The notes beneath the pieces were generated by a model. The model was given only the letters and a program-made list of their open reading frames with translations, had not been told where the DNA came from and did no database searches. A stretch of 64,000 bases of DNA, from positions 220,777 to 284,776 of the IMG/VR virus record IMGVR_UViG_3300020084_000003; one strand, written 5' to 3'. The position numbers were made by a program, and so were the translations under genes. Below are positions 6,150-61,228 of the stretch, piece after piece. Numbering within the stretch: position 1 is the first letter of the stretch; each line of letters opens with the position of its first letter.

Positions 6150-9100
6150 TTATACTGTTGTTCCTAGAGGATACATGCGGTCTGCCCTGAAATTTCTTAT
6201 CCAAGCTGAATTCAATTCAACTCTTGAAGATGCTTTCAAACCAACTCTAGTTCCCATTGGAGCATTTGCCGGAAGTTGATATAGACCATGATCTGACATT
6301 GATGTGTTTTCTATTAAACCAAAGGTATTGGTTCCATTAACTCTCAGAACGTAAGGATCAGGGTTGACACTCACAAGCTTTATTGTTCTGCCATCTAGAT
6401 GTATGTCAATTCTGTTTGTTGTATTTTGGAACATTCCAAGAGTAGTCCAAACACCATTAACTACCATCATTATAAAACTTCCTGTTGGGTTAGGGTGATC
6501 CCTTCTTCCCCATACCATGTAGTTGTTTTCATCAACAATTCTGAATGCAAGACCACCAGCATCACCCCAACCACTTAGATTACAAGAAATAATCATATCA
6601 GGAGAACCAAGATCAACTCTAGAATAAAGCGCCCTTTGTGATGTTCCCACGGCTGAACGAGTGGTGTTTGATGTTACTTGAATAGACCCTGCTGTTCCAC
6701 TTCCAACAATTGACCAGTTTGGATTGCTTTCTAGTGGACCGTCAGCCATTTCAAAATTATCATAAACGCTTGAAACCACGTTTGTTGTAGAACGAACAAT
6801 AACTTGATGCTCTCTGGTTACGGTATTACCCCAACAATCAGTTGCTCTAATGTTAACTGTATATGTTCCAACAGGTCTTGTTCCATTATTTGCGAAACGC
6901 AATATTCTTCCCATTGAAGCAAGTTGGAACATGTCTGAGTTTGCACCCGGAACAATTTCAATGCTAACATTTGGCTCATTAATCAAAATATCATGAGACA
7001 AAGTGCGTCCAGCATTTGCGTTAACCACGGTATGAGACAAAAATTCTAGTTGTTTTACAACTGGTTTCAAAGGCGGCGCATTACCATCAATTAATTCAGG
7101 TTCATCAGCCCATCTTGCCAATGGTGGAGGGCCACCACGATCATAGAATTGCAAGAATTCCAATGCACTACTGCCTGTAGGAGTAGTAATTGTAAAATCA
7201 ATCCATGTGACTGCACGGGCATGTGTAACTCGGTCAGCATTGAACATATGAACGCGAGTTCTCCAAACACCGTTATCCAACCAGCAACCATTACGTCTAA
7301 TGATATCATCACCGTGAACTTTGAACAATGTTCTTTTTGGCGTTCTAGAGTTATAACCATTAGGGAATGTTTCTGGTGAATGGAAGCTTGGGAATAGATA
7401 AGGTCCAGCGCAGTCAATCCAAACACCACTAATTGATATTCCACCACGACTTCCTAATGTAATATTTGTGCTAACATCAGAATCCAGAACAAATACCGGC
7501 GCGGCTCCAACTGCAATAGCACTATGGCCTGCTGGATAACCTGTGCCTAGTGGTTGTCTGTTAGGATCGGTTGGTTGAATTAATAGTGGATAATTCAGTG
7601 GCAATGCAGAAAGAGGTTGCGAATCATATGAACGCAAAATCCATGAATCGGCATTGGTTGGGTGTCTTGTCCACGGTCCCATAATTCCAAATATACCTAA
7701 TTCTCTGGCTCTTGTTTCTGTTATAGTTCTATATGAAGTGCTTTCTCTTGCAGTGACATTTTCAAAAGTGCATTGAACAGTAACGCCTTTCCAGTTAAGT
7801 CCCATACCAGAATCTACAAATGCTCTATAATAGTTTTTCATATGCAAGAAGCTGAATGAGAAACCTTGAGACACAGTTCCCATTGTGACAACACGTGAAG
7901 TGTGCATCATATTCAATGGACCGACATATAGAGATTTTGTAAACATATATTCACTGGAATACTGAGGAACCTCTATCGGATAAGGAACATCAATCATGTG
8001 GCATTTTTCAAATAATCCCGGTGTGGCATCATATTTTCTAACATCGCCGCCACGGTGAATAACAGAAATGCCGTGTGTGCAGGCATGACCTTCTACACCA
8101 AATACAGGCGGAATTTGAGGGCTTGTAACGGTAATATCTTCTTCAACCCAGACAGATTTGTATTCAGAGTTATCTCTGCTCCACCAAGATTGAATATCAG
8201 AAGAAATAAATCCGTCTGCCATTCTGATATCTTGCCAGCGAATCTGCCGAGTATTTCTTATCGGTTTTTGAGAATGCCATAGTGCAACATACTGACAACC
8301 AACACCGACACAATTTTTAAGTAAAATCATTCTTGATTGCAATTCGAATCCTACACCAGCATGTCCATTATGTCCAGTATAAAATTCTGCTCTGTCACCC
8401 CAAGATACACCTTCACCATTTCCTATGCCGCCCATTGCCACACAGTTAATTGCTTGACCAATTTCATTGCCCAATTCCCAAACAAATCCTGCGCCTCTAA
8501 AATGAGAAACAAAACAATCTTCCATTGCGCTTCTGGTTCCGTGAGCAACCAAAGCCCAACCCGGAATCGGAGGCGCACTTAATGGTGCATAAACACGAAC
8601 GCCAACCACATCAACCATTCGTGATGATTTATATGGACCACCTGACCAGTGTAAGTGGAAAGCCCATTTTCCTGTTACGTTTAATGGATCGGTAAGCTCT
8701 GTTCCACCTTGAACATCATATAGTGGATTTACTGTAACTACACCACCAGCTAATTCTACTCTATATGGAAATACTGTGTGTGGTGTATTTAATGTTGGAT
8801 TAGTATCAGAACGACCAAAGTTTTTAAAAGCTGCATAACGAATTGAAACGTCATCGGTTCCCATTGGCATGAAATGCGGTCTTTTTTGCAAGTTAGTCAA
8901 ATCTGCGGTCGGATCAATGGCACCGTCTTCTTCTTGTGAAGCCGCTCTAAATAAAATTGATGCATAATTGTTGCTGACGCAAGGCGCTACGGTTACGACT
9001 TCTGAGTTAGGTAATGTTGAAGTTTCCCCAAAATGGTTTCTTGACAATGGTCGGTTTATTCTAACCATATCATTTGCCATGACTTCGGTTACAGTCACTT

Positions 9101-24488: not shown

Positions 24489-27400
24489 TTAAGCTATTCT
24501 TACTACTAATTCGAATGGACCCGGATTAGAAGCATCAAATGCGGCTTGAGTATTAACTGTGGTTATTATTATAGATTGCCCCGCTGGACCGGTGTTTCCA
24601 ACTGGACCTTGCGGGCCAGTGTTACCTACCGGACCTTGAATACCTTGTGGTCCAGTATTTCCTTGCGGCCCTTGTGGACCTTGGATGCCCTGTGGGCCGG
24701 TGTTGCCAACTCGACCTTGAGGGCCTATCGGACCACGTTCGCCTACTGGTGAAAACGCAAGAATATCCCAATTAGTTGAAATATTTTCAAATGGTGAAGA
24801 ATTTCCATCTGTTTGTGAAATCCAAACAAAAGATGCAACTGATCCGTTAAGAGGATCGCCATCACCATCTAGTATTTGGTAAACACCATCTCCTTCTGTA
24901 TAAACAGAATTTGGATTCCACAATCCTCTCCAATTTAAACCGGTTCCTACATCACCTTTTGGACCAACTGGACCTTGTGAGCCTTGCGGACCTATCGGGC
25001 CTTGTGGACCCTCTGGGCCTGTTGGGCCTACTGGACCAATATCACCTTGTGGACCTTGTTCGCCCACTGGTGAAAATACAAGAATGTCCCAATCAATACC
25101 CATGTTTTCAAAAGGATTGCTATTGCCGGGTTCTTCTGGTAGCCAGATATAAGATATAACTGAACCATTCAACGGTGAACCAGAACTTATATTTATTGTT
25201 TGATATACAACATCGTTTTTATTATATATCTCACTAGATAGCCATTCACCCTTCCATTCAATTCCAACTTCACCTTGTGGGCCTACTGGACCTTGCGGGC
25301 CAATCGGGCCTTGTGGTCCCGCAACACCTTGCGGTCCAGTATTTCCTTGTGGACCCTGAACACCTTGTGGTCCTGTTGGACCTGTCGGGCCAACATCACC
25401 AACATCACCTTTTTCGCCTCTTTGGCCTTGGACACCTTGGATACCTTGTGGGCCTTGTGGTCCAGCAGGGCCAACCGGACCTGTATCGCCAATGTCACCC
25501 TTTTCGCCTCTTGGGCCTTGTGGTCCAGTTTCTCCAACTAAACCTTGTGGTCCGGTTTCACCTTGTGGTCCAGTAAGTCCAATTGGACCTTGAGGGCCGG
25601 TTTCGCCTTGTGGACCTTGGATACCTTGTGGACCTGTGTTACCGACCGGACCTTGAGGGCCAACCGGACCCTCTGGACCTTGGACGCCTTGTGGACCTGT
25701 GTTACCTGTCGGACCTACTGGACCTTGAATACCTTGTGGTCCAGTATTTCCAGTTAAACCTATTGGACCTTGGATACCTTGTGGACCTGTGTTACCAACT
25801 GGACCTTGAATACCCTGAATACCTTGTGGTCCGGTATTTCCGACCGGGCCTTGTGGACCTTGGATACCTTGTGGACCAGTGTTGCCAACCGGACCTTGCG
25901 GGCCAGCTATACCTTGTGGACCAGTGTTACCGACCGGACCTTGAGGACCAGTTGGGCCTTGTGGCCCCTGTGGACCTTGGATACCTTGGATACCATTTTC
26001 TCCCTGAATACCTTGCGGCCCTTGTGGGCCAACTGGACCTTGCGGACCTACTGGACCCGCTGGACCTTGTTCACCCACTGGTGAAAATACAAGAATATCC
26101 CAATTTACGGAAATATTTTCAGATGGTATGGAGTTTCCAGATGTATTTGCAGTCCAAACAAAAGATGCAACAGAACCATTTAGAGCATTATTGCTTGAGC
26201 TTAATATTTGATAAACAGCGTCATCTTTTTCATATACAGAATTAGAACTCCACAATCCTCTCCAATTTATACCTTTAGGACCAACTGGACCAATAGGGCC
26301 AACTAAACCACGCGGGCCAACTGGACCTTGCGGACCTTGAATGTTTCCAACGTTATTCCATGAATCATCATTAATTGAGTAAACCCACAAGTTTCCGTCA
26401 ATTATGTATGAATCTCCATTTTCAGATGTTAATGGCAGATCATCTTCTGATTCGAGCGCACCAATAATATTTACGCCGGTTCCATCGTCACCTTTTTCGC
26501 CAATATCACCTTTTGGACCAACCGGACCTTGCGGACCTACTGGACCTTGAATACCTTGTGGACCTGTGTTACCTGTCGGGCCAACTGGACCTTGAATGCC
26601 TTGTGGTCCGGTGTTGCCTTGTGGCCCTTGTGGTCCTATCGGGCCACGCTCACCTGTTGGACCTTGCGGCCCTTCCGGTCCCTGAATACCTTGTGGGCCA
26701 GTATTTCCAACCGGTCCTTGAGGGCCAGTTTCACCTTGTGGTCCGGTGTTGCCTTGTGGCCCTTGTGGACCGGTATTACCAACTGGACCTTGCGGACCTT
26801 GAATACCCTGAATACCTTGTGGACCGGTGTTACCGGTTGGACCTGTAGCGCCTCTATTTGCCAAAATAGACCATGTAGAGGTAGTAGTTGGAACAACGTT
26901 AATTGCAGTATTTACTATTAAGATATAAGAAGTATTTGAAGAGTAAACAACATCATTTCTTGAATATGTTGCAGCAGCGTTATAGTTTCCTCTCCAAGTT
27001 ATACCAACTGGACCGGTATTACCAACTGGACCTTGCGGACCTGTGTCACCGACCGGGCCTTGTGGTCCGGTTTCACCCTGAATACCTTGCGGTCCAGTAT
27101 TTCCAGTTAAACCTTGAATACCCTGCGGGCCTTGAATACCTTGTGGGCCTGTGTTACCAATATCGCCTTTTGGACCAACCGGACCTTGCGGACCTACTGG
27201 ACCTTGAATACCTTGCGGTCCAGTATTTCCAGTTAAACCTTGTGGGCCTTGTGGTCCGGTTTCGCCTCTCTCGCCTCTTTGACCTTGCGGACCTGTTGGA
27301 CCTACCGGGCCTTGTGGACCTTGGATACCTTGTGGACCTTCATCACCCACATCACCTTTTGGTCCAACTGGACCAATTGGACCTTGAATACCTTGTGGGC

Positions 27401-28520
27401 CAGTATTTCCAGTTAAACCTTGGATACCTTGTGGGCCTTGTGGACCGGTATTGCCAACTGGACCCTGCGGACCAACTGGACCTTGTTCGCCTTGCGAACC
27501 TCTGTTTGCAAGAATTGACCATGTAGATGTAGTTGTTGGATTTATATTGACAGCATTGTTTGATATTAAAATATATGATGTATTTGAATAATAAACAACA
27601 TCATTTCTAACATATGTAGCTGACGTGTTATAGCTTCCCCTCCAAGTTATACCTTGTGGGCCTACTATACCTTGAATACCTTGTGGCCCTTGTGGACCGG
27701 TATTACCAACTGGACCTTGCGGACCTGTGGCACCCTGCGGTCCAACTGGACCTTGCGGACCTATTGGACCAACTGGACCTTGAATGCCTTGTGGACCGGT
27801 GTTTCCAGTTAAACCTATTGGGCCTTGTGGTCCTATTGGACCTACCGGGCCACGCTCACCTGTTGGTCCTAATGGGCCTTGTGGTCCTATTGGACCCTCT
27901 GGGCCTATTGGACCTTGCGGACCAACATCACCAGTATCACCTTTAATTTTACCAATATTTTCCCAATTGCCTGAACCTTGGCTAAACCACAAATCTCCAT
28001 TAATAATATAACAGTCGCCTCTAGGAGCGTTTACTGGCAATAATGTTGGATTGTCTACAGTTCCTCTAATGTTAACACCGGTTCCTCTTGGACCTTGCGG
28101 ACCTGCTGGACCACGATCACCTTTCAGAGAACCACCATCAACAAATTCCAAACCATTATAATACCATAGATGCTCATCTATGATATACGCATCGCCTATC
28201 TCGGCAACTTCTGGCAAATTTATTACGCTTCCAAGATTACCTTTTATTAAGGTTCCTCTTGAAGTAATGTCGTTATTAAATTCTTTTATGAATATACGTG
28301 CGGTTTTATTTGCTGTTGCTACGGCTCTAAAGCGGACTGTAGTATTAGCTGGTATTGTTCCAATAAAACCCGGTCTAAGCAAAGCACCATTATTGTATGT
28401 TTCTGGTGCTTCAACCCCAAAACTCATTAAAACCGGTGCGCCTGTCTTTATGCTGACAAGCGACAAACCGGTTGTTACTATTGGTTCTGACCATGTGTTT
28501 CTAACTACCAAATCTGTCAT
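24489..28520 (-). CDS. collagen-like fibre protein
   Basis: Hundreds of G-P-Q/G-N-T/G-I-Q triplets interrupted by five W(R/K)G..Y...D.V.Y domains; late promoter at 28551-28558. Confidence 0.85.
24580..27940. repeat. collagen-coding tandem repeats
   Basis: Recurrent ggaccttg/tggtcc/gggcc units. Confidence 0.9.
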
Positions 28521-37990: not shown

Positions 37991-38064
37991 TGGCAGGGGC
38001 GGCAGGAATCAAACCCGCGCTAAATGGTTTGGAATCACTTGTGCTATCATTACACCACACCCCC
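37991..38064 (-). tRNA. tRNA-Trp(CCA)
   Basis: AGTGA-TTCCAAA-CCATT, G73, CCA; T loop TTTGATT. Confidence 0.85.
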
Positions 38065-45749: not shown

Positions 45750-45835
45750 TGGCGGTTCAGGCAGGACTTGAACCTGCACCCTTTTCGGACACCGGGCTTT
45801 TTACCCGGCGATGGCTACCATTTCATCACCGAACC
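45750..45835 (-). tRNA. class II tRNA-like gene with a non-canonical loop (UAAAAAG)
   Basis: Leu-like D arm, variable arm, T arm, G73-CCA; CCGGG-TAAAAAG-CCCGG. Confidence 0.55.
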
Positions 45836-52885: not shown

Positions 52886-53488
52886 TTAGAATTTGTAGAT
52901 AGCGCGAACACCAACAGTTTCTACGTCAGCAGTAAAGCCTTCGGCACCTTCAAACACGTTCTGATTAAAACCAGAATTGCCTAGATCGGTGCGGCTGTAT
53001 TTACCACCAACAACTAGATTGTCGGTAACTGCATAGTCAATACCTACGCCATATGTTGAAGAATCTTCTCCGTCAACTTTGGCATATCCTGCGGAAATGT
53101 ATGGCAGGACGCGATTGAATGCGTAACCGGCTTGTGCTTCTGCGGTATAAGTCTCAGCACCACCACTTTCAAATAGGCTTTCAGTTTTTTGATAACCTAG
53201 CTCACCACCCAGAACAAAGTTGTTCTCGAATTGATGACGATAACCAGCTACAACACCATAGGTAGTTGCGGTATCATCGCGGCTCTCAAACTCAAAATCT
53301 TCTGCAAAATCTAGATCAACAGCGGTGCGGGCGACTGTGCCACCAACATATGCACCTGACCATGAAAATTGTGGTGCGGTCACAACGGCAACTGGTTCAA
53401 CTTCAACCACCGAAGAAGTGTATCCACCAGCGACAGCGCCGGTAGCTAGAAAAGCTGAAAGACCAGCAGCAATAACAAATTTGTTCAT
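52886..53488 (-). CDS. outer-membrane beta-barrel protein (Omp25/Omp31/RopB-like)
   Basis: Signal peptide, WSGAYVGG, GYRHQF..FVLGGE, PYISAGYA, C-terminal YKF. Confidence 0.85.
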   Translation of the reverse strand: MNKFVIAAGLSAFLATGAVAGGYTSSVVEVEPVAVVTAPQFSWSGAYVGGTVARTAVDLDFAEDFEFESRDDTATTYGVVAGYRHQFENNFVLGGELGYQKTESLFESGGAETYTAEAQAGYAFNRVLPYISAGYAKVDGEDSSTYGVGIDYAVTDNLVVGGKYSRTDLGNSGFNQNVFEGAEGFTADVETVGVRAIYKF

Positions 53489-57471: not shown

Positions 57472-57557
57472 TGGAAGTCCCGGTCGGACTTGAACCGACA
57501 AACCGTTAGGCGCTGTCTTATGAGGACAGAGTGTTTAACCAATTCCACCACGGGACC
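57472..57557 (-). tRNA. class II (Leu-like body) tRNA with CAT anticodon, U73
   Basis: GTG-GAATTGGTTAAA-CAC, CTGTC-CTCATAA-GACAG, variable arm GCC-TAAC-GGT, CCA. Confidence 0.8.
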
Positions 57558-59016: not shown

Positions 59017-59379
59017 TTAAACACAATTACTGTATTTATTTTTCTCCCACTGTCTGAACCCAGAAATGGAATACTTATCGCCACCATCTTCTAGATATTC
59101 AGCCATTCGTTTTCTATGTTCTATAACAGAAGGAATCTTACCTAAGAATTTTTCTCTTTTTATTTCTCTGAAACGTTCTCTGCCCTTAAACCACATTTTA
59201 AGATATGCGTTTGTAAACTCAAACACTTCATCTTCTGTCAAAACAATATCCATTTCAGACTCAAAGATCATTGATTTAAAGTCACTAGTTATATTTTCAT
59301 TATAACCCAATCTAGCGTATCTTTTGCCATCCACATTCTCAATAATTACATCTTCTGGATAGATATATGTAGTTCTCAT
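59017..59379 (-). CDS. hypothetical protein (start re-called at MRTTYIY)
   Basis: RBS AGGA; the longer ORF overlaps an ncRNA. Confidence 0.55.
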   Translation of the reverse strand: MRTTYIYPEDVIIENVDGKRYARLGYNENITSDFKSMIFESEMDIVLTEDEVFEFTNAYLKMWFKGRERFREIKREKFLGKIPSVIEHRKRMAEYLEDGGDKYSISGFRQWEKNKYSNCV

Positions 59380-59395
59380 AATATGTTCCTTATAT

Positions 59396-59577
59396 CGGTA
59401 TCGCGGCAGGATTCGAACCTGCATCTAAAGGCATAAGACGCCAATTGCGTTTGAATTATCATCTACTCCACTATAATGACGTTTCGAACCATCACACAAT
59501 CTTCAATGAAATTAAGTTATAACACAAAATGTTCTCAACACACCTGTTTATAACAGCCAAATTTACACCACGCGAAT
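59396..59577 (-). ncRNA. 182-nt RNA with tRNA-like ends
   Basis: TTCGCG-TGGTGTAAATTTGG 5' end; GCAGG-TTCGAAT-CCTGC-CGCGATACCG 3' end. Confidence 0.5.
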
Positions 59578-59602: not shown

Positions 59603-59679
59603 TGGCGATCCCTGTAGGATTCGAACCTACGACCTAGTGCTTAGAAGGCACTTGCTCTAATCCACTGAGCTAAGGAACC
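59603..59679 (-). tRNA. tRNA-Arg(TCT)
   Basis: AGTGC-CTTCTAA-GCACT, CCA. Confidence 0.95.
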
Positions 59680-59762
59680 AAAACTTTCCGATTTATGGGT
59701 GATATCGGGAACCACTTCTACTGTCTACACTACTATGAAAGCCGTGTCAACAGGTTATTTTC

Positions 59763-59841: not shown

Positions 59842-60360
59842 TCATTTAGGTTTAGACCAATATCCTCTCGGTGGTTTAACTATACCCAATGAAACACATC
59901 TTTTAGAGATAGCTTTATCAGAAACATTGTATCTTTTTGCGATTTCAGTTGTAGGAATTTCCCACACTAATTTCTCAAGTTCTTCTTTACTTATCTCAAA
60001 CTTTCTTTTCTTCATAGCACTACAAGCTACCGAACAGCATTTTCTAGGGCTACTTTTTCTATACTCGAAATTTGTTCCACACAATTCACAAGTATATGTA
60101 ACAATCATTCCACCACGATCTTCAAGCATATGAAGTCTAGCATGTTCAGATTTAGTCATAACTTGCAAATTATCAATCTTGTTATTTGCTTTGTCTCTAT
60201 CTTTATGGTGAACTACCTCATCTTCATTAAGAAGTCTACCAGTTTCTTCATACACTACATAATGGTGTTCATTCACTTTACCGTATTTATCCGCGCAAGG
60301 ATGGTCAGGTATTATAGCATACATATATCCTCGGGACTTATCTAAAGTAAATTCTACCAT
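59842..60360 (-). CDS. HNH homing endonuclease with Zn ribbon (start re-called at MVEFTL)
   Basis: EHHYV..EVVHHKDRDKANNKIDNLQVMTKSEHARLH; CELC..CCS..C. Confidence 0.85.
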   Translation of the reverse strand: MVEFTLDKSRGYMYAIIPDHPCADKYGKVNEHHYVVYEETGRLLNEDEVVHHKDRDKANNKIDNLQVMTKSEHARLHMLEDRGGMIVTYTCELCGTNFEYRKSSPRKCCSVACSAMKKRKFEISKEELEKLVWEIPTTEIAKRYNVSDKAISKRCVSLGIVKPPRGYWSKPK

Positions 60361-60384: not shown

Positions 60385-60465
60385 TGGCACTCCCGACAGG
60401 ATTCGAACCTGCATCTGCCATCCAGTTACGCTATATAGTTTAGAAGACTACCACGATACGGGAGC
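60385..60465 (-). tRNA. D-armless tRNA-Arg(TCT)-like RNA
   Basis: GCTCCCG/CGGGAGT-G-CCA; anticodon arm GTAGT-CTTCTAA-ACTAT only 7 nt after the acceptor; D-loop-like AACTGGAT in the variable region. Confidence 0.65.
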
Positions 60466-60476
60466 AAAGTAATTAA

Positions 60477-60760
60477 TTCCGATTTATAGATAATCGGGAA
60501 CTGCGCGAATAATCGGGCACCAGAGGACAATTTGTTTTATGCATTTGCTACTATCAGCTTGTCACGACTGACAATGCACATTAACCACATGGGCGGATAA
60601 CTGTCAAGTTCCAATGAGTTCCGATTTAAGGATAATCGGGAACCGACCGTGAGGTTTAATACTCACCGACCACCAGAGGACAATTTGTTTTAAGTGTTTG
60701 TTACTACTGAACTGCCAAATCCAGCAACACTCATTAACCATATAGGTAGATAATTGTCAA
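60477..60760 (-). repeat. tandem duplicated promoter + structured RNA unit (60477-60607, 60619-60760)
   Basis: Shared TTGACA..TGGTTAATG, TAGTA, AAAACAAATTGTCCTCTGGTG, TTCCCGATTATC..AAATCGGAA. Confidence 0.8.
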
Positions 60761-61087
60761 TTTCTAAAACGTCGCACCTGACACAATTTTAAGGATGTAA
60801 AGCCATCCACCATCTAGATATGATTAAATCGCTTTGCATTGCGATAAACTCTTGGCTCATATACTAGTGGCCTCTTCCTTCCTTGTCAAGTAGGATTTTG
60901 CGGTCTTTTGCTTTATACGACGAATTCTAATAATTGTTGTGACTTTCTAGAGGGTATGTTGACTTTCCTCTAACGCTTTTCTCCCATTCACAAACGATCC
61001 GGCTGGCCCAACAAGAAACTTATGTCTCCAATGAGACTGCTTGAAAAGCCCTAAGTCAACGGCCCGGATTCTTTAAAAAGTATTTTG

Positions 61088-61205
61088 CTCGGGCGGCAGG
61101 GTTCGAACCTGCGACCACCTGATTACTTTTGAAGCTTCCCGAATCGAACGGGTATTTACCTTTAGCTTCCACAGTCAGGCGCTCTACCAACTGAGCTACA
61201 CCCGA
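61088..61205 (-). tRNA. tRNA-Asn(GTT) interrupted by a 45-nt insert in the anticodon
   Basis: CCTGA-CTGT|45 nt|TAA-TCAGG; 118 nt = 73 + 45; G73; CCA not encoded. Confidence 0.8.
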
Positions 61206-61228
61206 GCAAAATACTCTTATTTAATTTT

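Follow-up and report, generated by a model that had tools for sequence, protein, structure and literature searches.

Does the arginine tRNA-like sequence on the minus strand at positions 60385-60465 of the analyzed DNA represent a decayed tRNA copy, a tRNA that has lost its D-arm, or a working tRNA of unusual construction? The window, i.e., the whole 64,000-nt stretch that was analyzed, is the last 64 kb of the 284,776-bp IMG/VR virus record IMGVR_UViG_3300020084_000003, which is rated 100% complete. The virus is a T4-like jumbo myovirus from lake water, encoding terminase, portal, sheath, and baseplate proteins, with 38% GC and 32 tRNAs detected by ARAGORN (28 of them within the window), almost all with an encoded CCA. 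A sequence-only reading of the locus had described a tRNA-Arg(UCU)-like RNA with intact acceptor stem, T arm, CCA, and anticodon arm, only 7 nt between the acceptor and anticodon stems, and a D-loop-like motif moved behind the anticodon arm. All of these elements are present, and this observation is confirmed (Table 1).

Table 1. Positions of the candidate tRNA gene, its elements, and neighboring features in the window
Feature	Position	Strand	Sequence or remark
Whole non-canonical tRNA-Arg(UCU) gene	60385-60465	-	81 nt including the encoded CCA
Match to the Rfam tRNA model	60388-60465	-	36.8 bits
Acceptor stem, 5' strand	60459-60465	-	GCUCCCG; pairs with 60389-60395, 7 bp including G1-U72
Connector, entire	60452-60458	-	UAUCGUG, 7 nt
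U8, A9, and one connector nucleotide	60456-60458	-	
D-stem-like helix H3, 5' strand	60453-60455	-	CGU; pairs with 60429-60431
Single nucleotide between H3 and the anticodon stem	60452	-	Position-26-like (equivalence inferred)
Anticodon arm	60435-60451	-	5-bp stem, 7-nt loop CUUCUAA
Anticodon	60442-60444	-	UCU
Connector from the anticodon stem to the H3 3' strand	60432-60434	-	AUA
D-stem-like helix H3, 3' strand	60429-60431	-	GCG
D-loop-like motif	60421-60428	-	UAACUGGA; U, A14-like, R15-like, G18 G19-like, A20-like
Linker	60413-60420	-	UGGCAGAU; ends in the position-48-like U
T arm	60396-60412	-	GGUUCGAAUCC; 5-bp stem, loop UUCGAAU
Acceptor stem, 3' strand	60389-60395	-	CGGGAGU
Discriminator and encoded CCA	60385-60388	-	G73
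Upstream hairpin	60477-60500	-	TTCCCGAT...ATCGGAA; 12 nt before the gene
Second copy of the hairpin	60619-60642		
Third copy of the hairpin	59686-59711		Just upstream of the canonical tRNA-Arg(UCU)
HNH_3 homing-endonuclease gene	59842-60360	-	Starts about 25 nt downstream of the candidate; likely start at the in-frame ATG behind the tRNA
Canonical tRNA-Arg(UCU)	59603-59679		
Orphan T-arm fragment	about 59395-59430		3' acceptor-like strand CGCGAUA

The Rfam tRNA model (RF00005) scores the locus above its gathering threshold of 29 bits, but only by deleting the D-arm positions (15 model positions are aligned to 4 nt) and inserting 19 nt in the variable region, and ARAGORN does not call it. Contigs from four other lake-water samples cover the locus with no differences; the arrangement is thus not an assembly artefact, although these contigs carry no information on constraint. 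The minimum-energy fold of the single sequence is no more stable than shuffled sequences (z = -0.22), so stability alone would not have identified the RNA; the fold does, however, pair CGU of the connector with GCG behind the anticodon arm. The hairpin upstream of the gene, which is context and not shown to be functional, occurs in only three copies in the 285-kb genome.

If the locus were a decaying copy, relatives would be expected to show broken stems without compensatory change. No close relative of the phage was found by megablast and blastn against 50,697 phage records, its portal protein is 50% identical or less to that of any cultured phage, and viral-contig hits at 100% identity are fragments from the same metagenome that do not reach the locus, which made a synteny-based comparison impossible. 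The architecture itself was therefore searched for in viral contigs. A first pattern fixing both the anticodon loop and the exact D-loop-like motif found nothing, whereas the pattern CTTCTAA-N24-36-GGTTCGAATCC returned more than 118 viral loci. In 57 distinct sequences from these loci, a 7-nt complement of the 3' acceptor strand lies 12-13 nt before the anticodon loop, as in the candidate, while this distance is 24 nt in a normal tRNA. In total, pattern scans and a covariance model recovered about 120 distinct relatives with the same layout.

A structure-blind MAFFT alignment of the 57 sequences and the candidate (A1, 58 sequences) revealed strong conservation of pairing. For the acceptor stem, H3, anticodon stem, and T stem together, 95.5% of cells are paired, against 62.3% in shuffles and 37-47% in slid controls, with 400 double-sided changes against 107 in shuffles (none of 500 shuffles reached this value). 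The acceptor helix and the T stem are each 99% paired in the family, and all seven acceptor pairs show double-sided changes; the four inner anticodon-stem pairs are 96-99% paired and the outermost pair 71-80%, and all five covary. H3, formed by connector positions 4-6 and the three nucleotides before UAA, shows four pair types at each of its pairs and is paired at its first position in 58 of 58 sequences (CG 46, UA 6, GC 4, AU 2), and at its second by GC in 32, CG in 9, AU in 8, and UA in 7; the third pair is weaker, being mismatched in 16 of 58 sequences here and in 29 of 66 in the second sample described below. In the subfamily with an 8-nt connector, two more connector bases pair with the two bases after GGA (GC 14 and AU 6 with no mismatch at one pair; CG 11, UA 6, GC 1, and 4 other at the second). 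RNAalifold, given only the alignment, predicts the same helices.

A second sample (A5, 67 sequences) was collected without fixing the anticodon and aligned to R1, a covariance model built from A1, so that its pair counts lean towards that structure. In this sample 96.0% of cells are paired, with 451 double-sided changes (again 0 of 500 shuffles as high) and a covariation score of 0.908 against 0.223 in shuffles. The model R1 separates members of the family (54-88 bits) from ordinary tRNAs (at most 47 bits). The candidate scores 79.3 bits (E = 2.7e-18), and the 32 ordinary tRNAs of its genome at most 37.8 bits. Homologues thus show conserved, covarying pairing and not the random decay that the sequence-only reading had named as its refutation.

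The possibility that the locus is a tRNA pseudogene or a rearrangement scar left by homing-endonuclease activity in the tRNA array is hence very unlikely. It draws on the HNH gene directly downstream (Pfam HNH_3, E = 8.5e-12), on a 20-nt direct repeat linking the T arm of the candidate to the orphan T-arm fragment about 990 nt away, and on the ARAGORN rejection. However, the stems are intact, CCA is encoded, and the layout recurs in phages of Proteobacteria, Actinobacteria, and Bacteroidota. The connector is also complementary to the 3' acceptor-like strand of the orphan fragment, which suggested a split or nested tRNA; as UAUCG-type connectors are a conserved feature of the family, this complementarity is best explained by chance, and the orphan scores only 22 bits with the family model. 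HNH genes adjoin the member in PAK_P2, Mildred21, and SOVA965 as well, and the tRNA array of the present phage is interspersed with HNH and GIY-YIG homing endonucleases. Nevertheless, only about 15 of 135 ORFs flanking members are homing endonucleases (HNH_3 7, HNH_2 4, HNH 3, GIY-YIG 3), and no other protein family recurs among them; the association is a general trait of phage tRNA arrays (PMC5966550).

Has the D-arm been lost, as the sequence-only reading proposed? In A1, U8 and A9 are invariant, as are the U and the first A following the second H3 strand, while GG is nearly invariant and the GGA at least 90% conserved. The second A of the motif is A in 105 and G in 11 of 117 members. Across these 117 distinct members, the third base of the motif (position-15-like) and the base just before the T stem (position-48-like) are A/U in 105, G/C in 10, and other in 2, which is the pattern of the Levitt pair of canonical tRNAs. 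Together with U8, the A14-like A, and GG, it argues that the relocated motif does the job of a D-loop, although positional equivalence is inferred. Exactly one column separates H3 from the anticodon stem in all 58 rows of A1, and the connector behind the anticodon stem has 3-4 nt in nearly all members. The linker varies from 4 to about 12 nt and ends in AU or AC; near-identical linkers (UGGAAGAU) occur in the Rhizobium phage RHph_I1_18 member and in several contigs. CCA is encoded in 74 of 117 members, and the discriminator is G, U, or A, never C. The interpretation offered by the sequence-only reading is thus supported only in part: the RNA is tRNA-Arg(UCU)-like, no D hairpin lies between the acceptor and anticodon arms, and a real D-loop motif sits behind the latter, but the D-arm is rearranged rather than missing.

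Compared with a canonical tRNA, in which U8-A9 is followed by the D-stem 5' strand, D-loop, D-stem 3' strand, N26, anticodon arm, variable loop, and T arm, the strand order here is U8-A9, (N), one strand of the short helix, one nucleotide, anticodon arm, 3-4 nt, the complementary strand, the D-loop motif (U-A-R-..-G-G-A), a linker ending in a position-48-like pyrimidine, and T arm. In this reading, the block containing the D-stem 3' strand, N26, and the anticodon arm now precedes the block containing the D-stem 5' strand and D-loop, i.e., the D/anticodon domain is circularly permuted. Such an arrangement keeps the same helices and could keep the same coaxial stack and elbow contact, while changing three backbone connections, all located in the tRNA core. 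A partial tandem duplication followed by two deletions could produce it.

The anticodons point to arginine. In the anticodon-free sample they are ACG (20), UCU (19), UCG (9), CCU (5), and GCG (1), all Arg, besides UAU and GAU (3 together, Ile) and aberrant loops (2). C35 and U36 or G36, which are identity elements for bacterial ArgRS along with A20 and A/G73 (PMC9976931), are present in the candidate and in the Arg anticodons of the family. An A follows GG in the candidate and in nearly all Arg-type members, its correspondence to the A20 site in three dimensions being inferred. The constancy of this A in the second sample is partly by construction, as the search pattern required GGA; A1 had no such requirement. 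A scan requiring a non-A base found only 6 members in 100 loci, with anticodons UAU (2), GAU (2), CAU, and UGU; five of them have GGU, and the sixth (locus L470, positions 8533-8615) reads AGCG there and has no GG. The base after GG therefore tracks amino-acid identity, as A20 does for bacterial ArgRS. As the exact patterns fix the T loop and either the anticodon loop or GTAA..GG, the frequencies and the Arg bias do not constitute a census.

The sequence-only reading also regarded this copy as probably specialized because a normal tRNA-Arg lies 700 bp away; this is not shown. The canonical tRNA-Arg(UCU) makes the copy formally redundant in this phage, and a non-canonical UCU coexists with a canonical UCU in one other contig (L258). 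In other phages, however, the same type often supplies Arg anticodons that have no canonical gene in the fetched stretch, behaving as a regular member of the tRNA set: non-canonical UCG and UCU occur beside canonical GCG and CCU, non-canonical ACG and UCG beside canonical CCU, and one 10-kb stretch holds non-canonical CCU, UCU, ACG, and UCG and no canonical Arg tRNA. Of 117 members, 92 lie within 1 kb of another tRNA. In the present phage, AGA makes up 57% of Arg codons (26.5 per 1000 codons).

The family is widespread in phages and nearly confined to viral sequences. Among 96 viral sources (91 new pattern loci plus 5 cultured-phage loci), 60 matches at 54 bits or more were obtained, some loci holding several copies, whereas the same anticodon-free pattern in 185,579 prokaryotic genomes gave 120 loci, of which only 3 hold true members, all inside dense tRNA arrays of MAG contigs. 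Nine cultured phages carry a member scoring 64-84 bits: Limnohabitans DC31, Microbacterium Pumpernickel, Pseudomonas PAK_P2, Agrobacterium Atu_ph04, Stenotrophomonas SOVA965, Streptomyces Mildred21, Rhizobium RHph_I1_18, Caulobacter CcrColossus, and Maribacter Panino; related hits occur in P. putida and P. syringae phages. None is annotated as tRNA-Arg: most are blank, that of Mildred21 is labeled tRNA-Phe(gaa), and two are overlapped by CDS calls. ARAGORN misses 115 of 117 members. Full-text searches found no earlier description of such tRNAs, though these covered open-access papers and bioRxiv only, so that an earlier report cannot be excluded.

The locus most likely encodes a functional elongator tRNA-Arg(UCU) of a phage-borne family with a permuted D/anticodon domain; this is held with fairly good confidence, while the existence of the conserved, structured family is close to certain. 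The analysis itself establishes the helices and their covariation, the conserved D-loop motif, the 15/48-type covariation, the restriction of anticodons to Arg with rare Ile/CAU/Thr relatives that change the base after GG, and the residence in phage tRNA arrays. By contrast, it is inferred, from connectivity and sequence alone, that the short helix stacks under the anticodon stem as the D stem does, that the relocated D-loop reaches the T loop to form an L-shape of normal dimensions, that host ArgRS charges the RNA through the A20-like base and C35, and that EF-Tu and the ribosome use it to read AGA, the main Arg codon of the phage. Expression, processing, aminoacylation, and use in translation are likewise inferred, the last two with indirect support from the anticodon spectrum and array complementarity. 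None of the listed sequencing runs holding this locus is on record as RNA; among published expression data, the abundant PAK_P3 small RNAs sRNA1 and sRNA2 (PMC4933390) are different sequences, and the PAK_P4 paper gave nothing usable. Acceptance by the translation machinery is plausible, since E. coli HisRS, EF-Tu, and the ribosome accept an engineered tRNA lacking the whole D-arm without adaptation, with PNPase as the limiting factor (Edelmann et al., PMC11551756).

Alternatively, the RNA could be a tRNA-shaped decoy soaking up a host factor, such as a tRNA-Arg-directed nuclease, ArgRS, or a sensor, or could carry arginine for a non-ribosomal reaction. The unusual core combined with a retained acceptor/T minihelix, anticodon loop, and A20-like base, as well as the coexistence with a canonical tRNA of the same anticodon in this phage and in L258, would fit such a role. 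It appears unlikely, however, as members carry five Arg anticodons with A34 only as ACG, as in bacterial decoders, fill isoacceptor slots left empty by canonical genes, and retain the anticodon stem length, the 7-nt loop, and U33; moreover, a subgroup switched to Ile/Thr anticodons together with the base after GG, and no conserved partner protein gene lies beside members.

As to why phages would keep this wiring, the favored guess is that the altered core escapes some factor recognizing canonical tRNA cores, such as a host tRNA-targeting nuclease or a decay pathway. In a special case of the working-tRNA explanation, the core would have been selected because it evades a host tRNA-targeting immune nuclease or modifier, or the host-shutoff enzyme of the phage itself, that recognizes canonical tRNA-Arg; these non-cloverleaf tRNAs would then be a structural form of tRNA-based counter-defence. 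This remains a tentative possibility. The near-confinement to viral sequences and the contig with a full non-canonical Arg set are in line with it, and phage tRNAs that evade anticodon nucleases are an established theme (PMC10264068). On the other hand, no tRNA-Arg-specific defence was identified and no linked defence or anti-defence gene was found among the flanking ORFs, the anticodon loops, which are the usual nuclease target, are ordinary, and canonical and non-canonical Arg tRNAs are mixed within the same arrays. Neutral persistence of a working variant spread by horizontal transfer is equally possible and fits these mixed arrays equally well.

Textbooks and recent literature hold that cytosolic and bacterial tRNAs vary only in arm lengths (for cytosolic tRNAs, PMC11551756). 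A conserved, widespread phage family with a different strand order in the core would be the first natural exception acting in bacterial cells. It would show that the L-shape can be built with another topology, give a natural test case for studies of ArgRS, EF-Tu, RNase P, and the ribosome, offer new orthogonal scaffolds for genetic-code engineering, and raise the question of what selective pressure in phage-host conflict favors it. Because standard annotation misses these genes, phage tRNA complements and codon-usage analyses are systematically incomplete for arginine.

With canonical bacterial and phage tRNA-Arg, such as the neighboring tRNA-Arg(UCU), the RNA shares the 7-bp acceptor stem, U8, the 5-bp anticodon stem with a 7-nt loop and U33, Arg anticodons, the GGUUCGAAUCC T arm, the discriminator plus CCA, a D-loop-type motif with GG and an A20-like base, and 15/48-type covariation; it differs in that the D-stem-like helix encloses the anticodon arm and the D-loop motif follows that arm in place of a variable loop. 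Mitochondrial D-armless tRNAs (metazoan mt-tRNA-Ser(AGY)) and the engineered E. coli 'mini HisT' (PMC11551756) also have a short connector replacing a D hairpin, and both show that translation machinery can use non-cloverleaf tRNAs. Those RNAs, however, have lost the D-loop and the D/T-loop contact and adopt a Y- or boomerang-like shape, whereas this family keeps a conserved D-loop motif (UAAnnGGA), a D-stem-like helix, and a fully canonical T loop, and would act in bacterial cytoplasm rather than in organelles. The circularly permuted tRNA genes of Cyanidioschyzon merolae and other algae likewise encode tRNA segments in a non-standard order, but there the whole gene is permuted, with the 3' half upstream of the 5' half, and processing through a circular intermediate restores a canonical mature tRNA. 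Here the acceptor strands lie at the two ends of the gene in normal order, only the internal D/anticodon domain is permuted, and nothing suggests re-ligation, so that the mature RNA itself would be non-canonical. Type II tRNAs (Leu, Ser, Tyr, Sec; allo-tRNAs) also carry extra nucleotides between the anticodon and T arms, which is how Rfam aligns this RNA, but they have a normal D-arm and a self-contained variable hairpin, whereas the extra segment here pairs with the 5' connector and carries the D-loop motif.

The surroundings of the candidate, the non-canonical tRNA-Arg(UCU) gene, contain further features. An orphan T arm plus 3' acceptor-like fragment shares with the candidate an exact 20-nt repeat, AGATGCAGGTTCGAATCCTG. 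As it scores only 22 bits with the family covariance model R1, it is probably a decayed second copy; the next ORF also begins inside it. A hairpin, TTCCCGAT..ATCGGAA, occurs only three times in the 285-kb genome. All three copies lie upstream of the two Arg(UCU) genes, and its 5' arm resembles their 5' acceptor strands. Two 153-nt tandem units upstream of the candidate each carry a TTGACA-17-TTAATG promoter-like site.

Among the family members found in other viral sequences (L numbers), two (L235 and L242) have aberrant anticodon loops: in one the loop has 8 nt, UGUUCUAA, and the RNA may be a frameshift-type decoder, whereas in the other it contains a duplicated or inserted UUCGAA segment. Non-Arg members of the same architecture carry the anticodons UAU, GAU, CAU and UGU and have GGU instead of GGA in the relocated D-loop, except for L470:8533-8615, which has no GG there; they sometimes occur as adjacent pairs. 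The family is also the cause of GenBank annotation errors. The Mildred21 member, with the anticodon loop CUUCGAA (Arg UCG), is labelled tRNA-Phe(gaa), while in Maribacter phage Panino (L388) and Rhizobium phage RHph_I1_18 (L165) a CDS is drawn over the RNA gene.

Coordinates of additional features in the window, in the phage's own genome (G000:C1) and in other viral sequences (L numbers)
Sequence	Position	Strand	Feature
Window	24489-28520	-	ORF with collagen repeats
Window	37994-38064	-	tRNA-like match
G000:C1	26635-26717	+	tRNA-like match
G000:C1	259130-259212	-	tRNA-like match
G000:C1	265956-266035	-	tRNA-like match
Window	45750-45835; 57472-57557	-	Long-variable-arm tRNAs
G000:C1	26834-26921	+	Long-variable-arm tRNA
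Window	52886-53488	-	ORF with outer-membrane beta-barrel domain
Window	59017-59424		ORF beginning inside the orphan fragment
Window	~59395-59475	-	Orphan T arm plus 3' acceptor-like fragment
Window	59407-59426; 60397-60416		20-nt repeat (orphan fragment; candidate)
Window	59686-59711, 60477-60500, 60619-60642 (-); 60518-60614 and 60671-60767		Hairpin copies and tandem units
Window	61076-61218	-	tRNA-Lys-like gene
Window	61088-61205		Rfam tRNA match in the tRNA-Lys-like gene
L235	5533-5617	+	Member with aberrant anticodon loop
L242	2260-2349	+	Member with aberrant anticodon loop
L440	3837-3919	-	Non-Arg member
L450	4100-4270	+	Non-Arg member(s)
L470	8097-8615	+	Non-Arg member(s)
L405	877-955	-	Non-Arg member
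L191	5506-5585		Non-Arg member
L258	5764-5856; 7511-7594		Non-Arg members
L166 (Streptomyces phage Mildred21)	91367-91442		Member labelled tRNA-Phe(gaa)

Two ORFs of the window were also identified by Pfam. One encodes 1343 aa and is made largely of collagen triple-helix repeats (Collagen, E 2.8e-111, 12 stretches); it is presumably a fibre protein. The other contains an outer-membrane beta-barrel domain (OMP_b-brl, E 4.4e-15), which suggests a Gram-negative host.

This phage may encode more unusual tRNAs. Further tRNA-like matches are not called by ARAGORN: the one at window 37994-38064 is recognized by the Rfam tRNA model at 51 bits, while the three given in G000:C1 coordinates are weak hits of model R1 at 21-30 bits. 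Three tRNAs of 86-88 nt have a long variable arm and are type II-like, yet they bear AAA (nominally 'Phe'), CAU ('Met') and CUU ('Lys'), anticodons that normally belong to type I tRNAs. Finally, a tRNA-Lys-like gene (Rfam tRNA, 59 bits), likewise not called by ARAGORN, carries a 48-nt structured insertion in the anticodon loop. It has no CCA, its acceptor stem is extended to about 18-20 bp by complementary leader and trailer, and its fold energy is -62.2 kcal/mol with z = -7.0. The insertion is not a bulge-helix-bulge motif and is too short for a group I intron.
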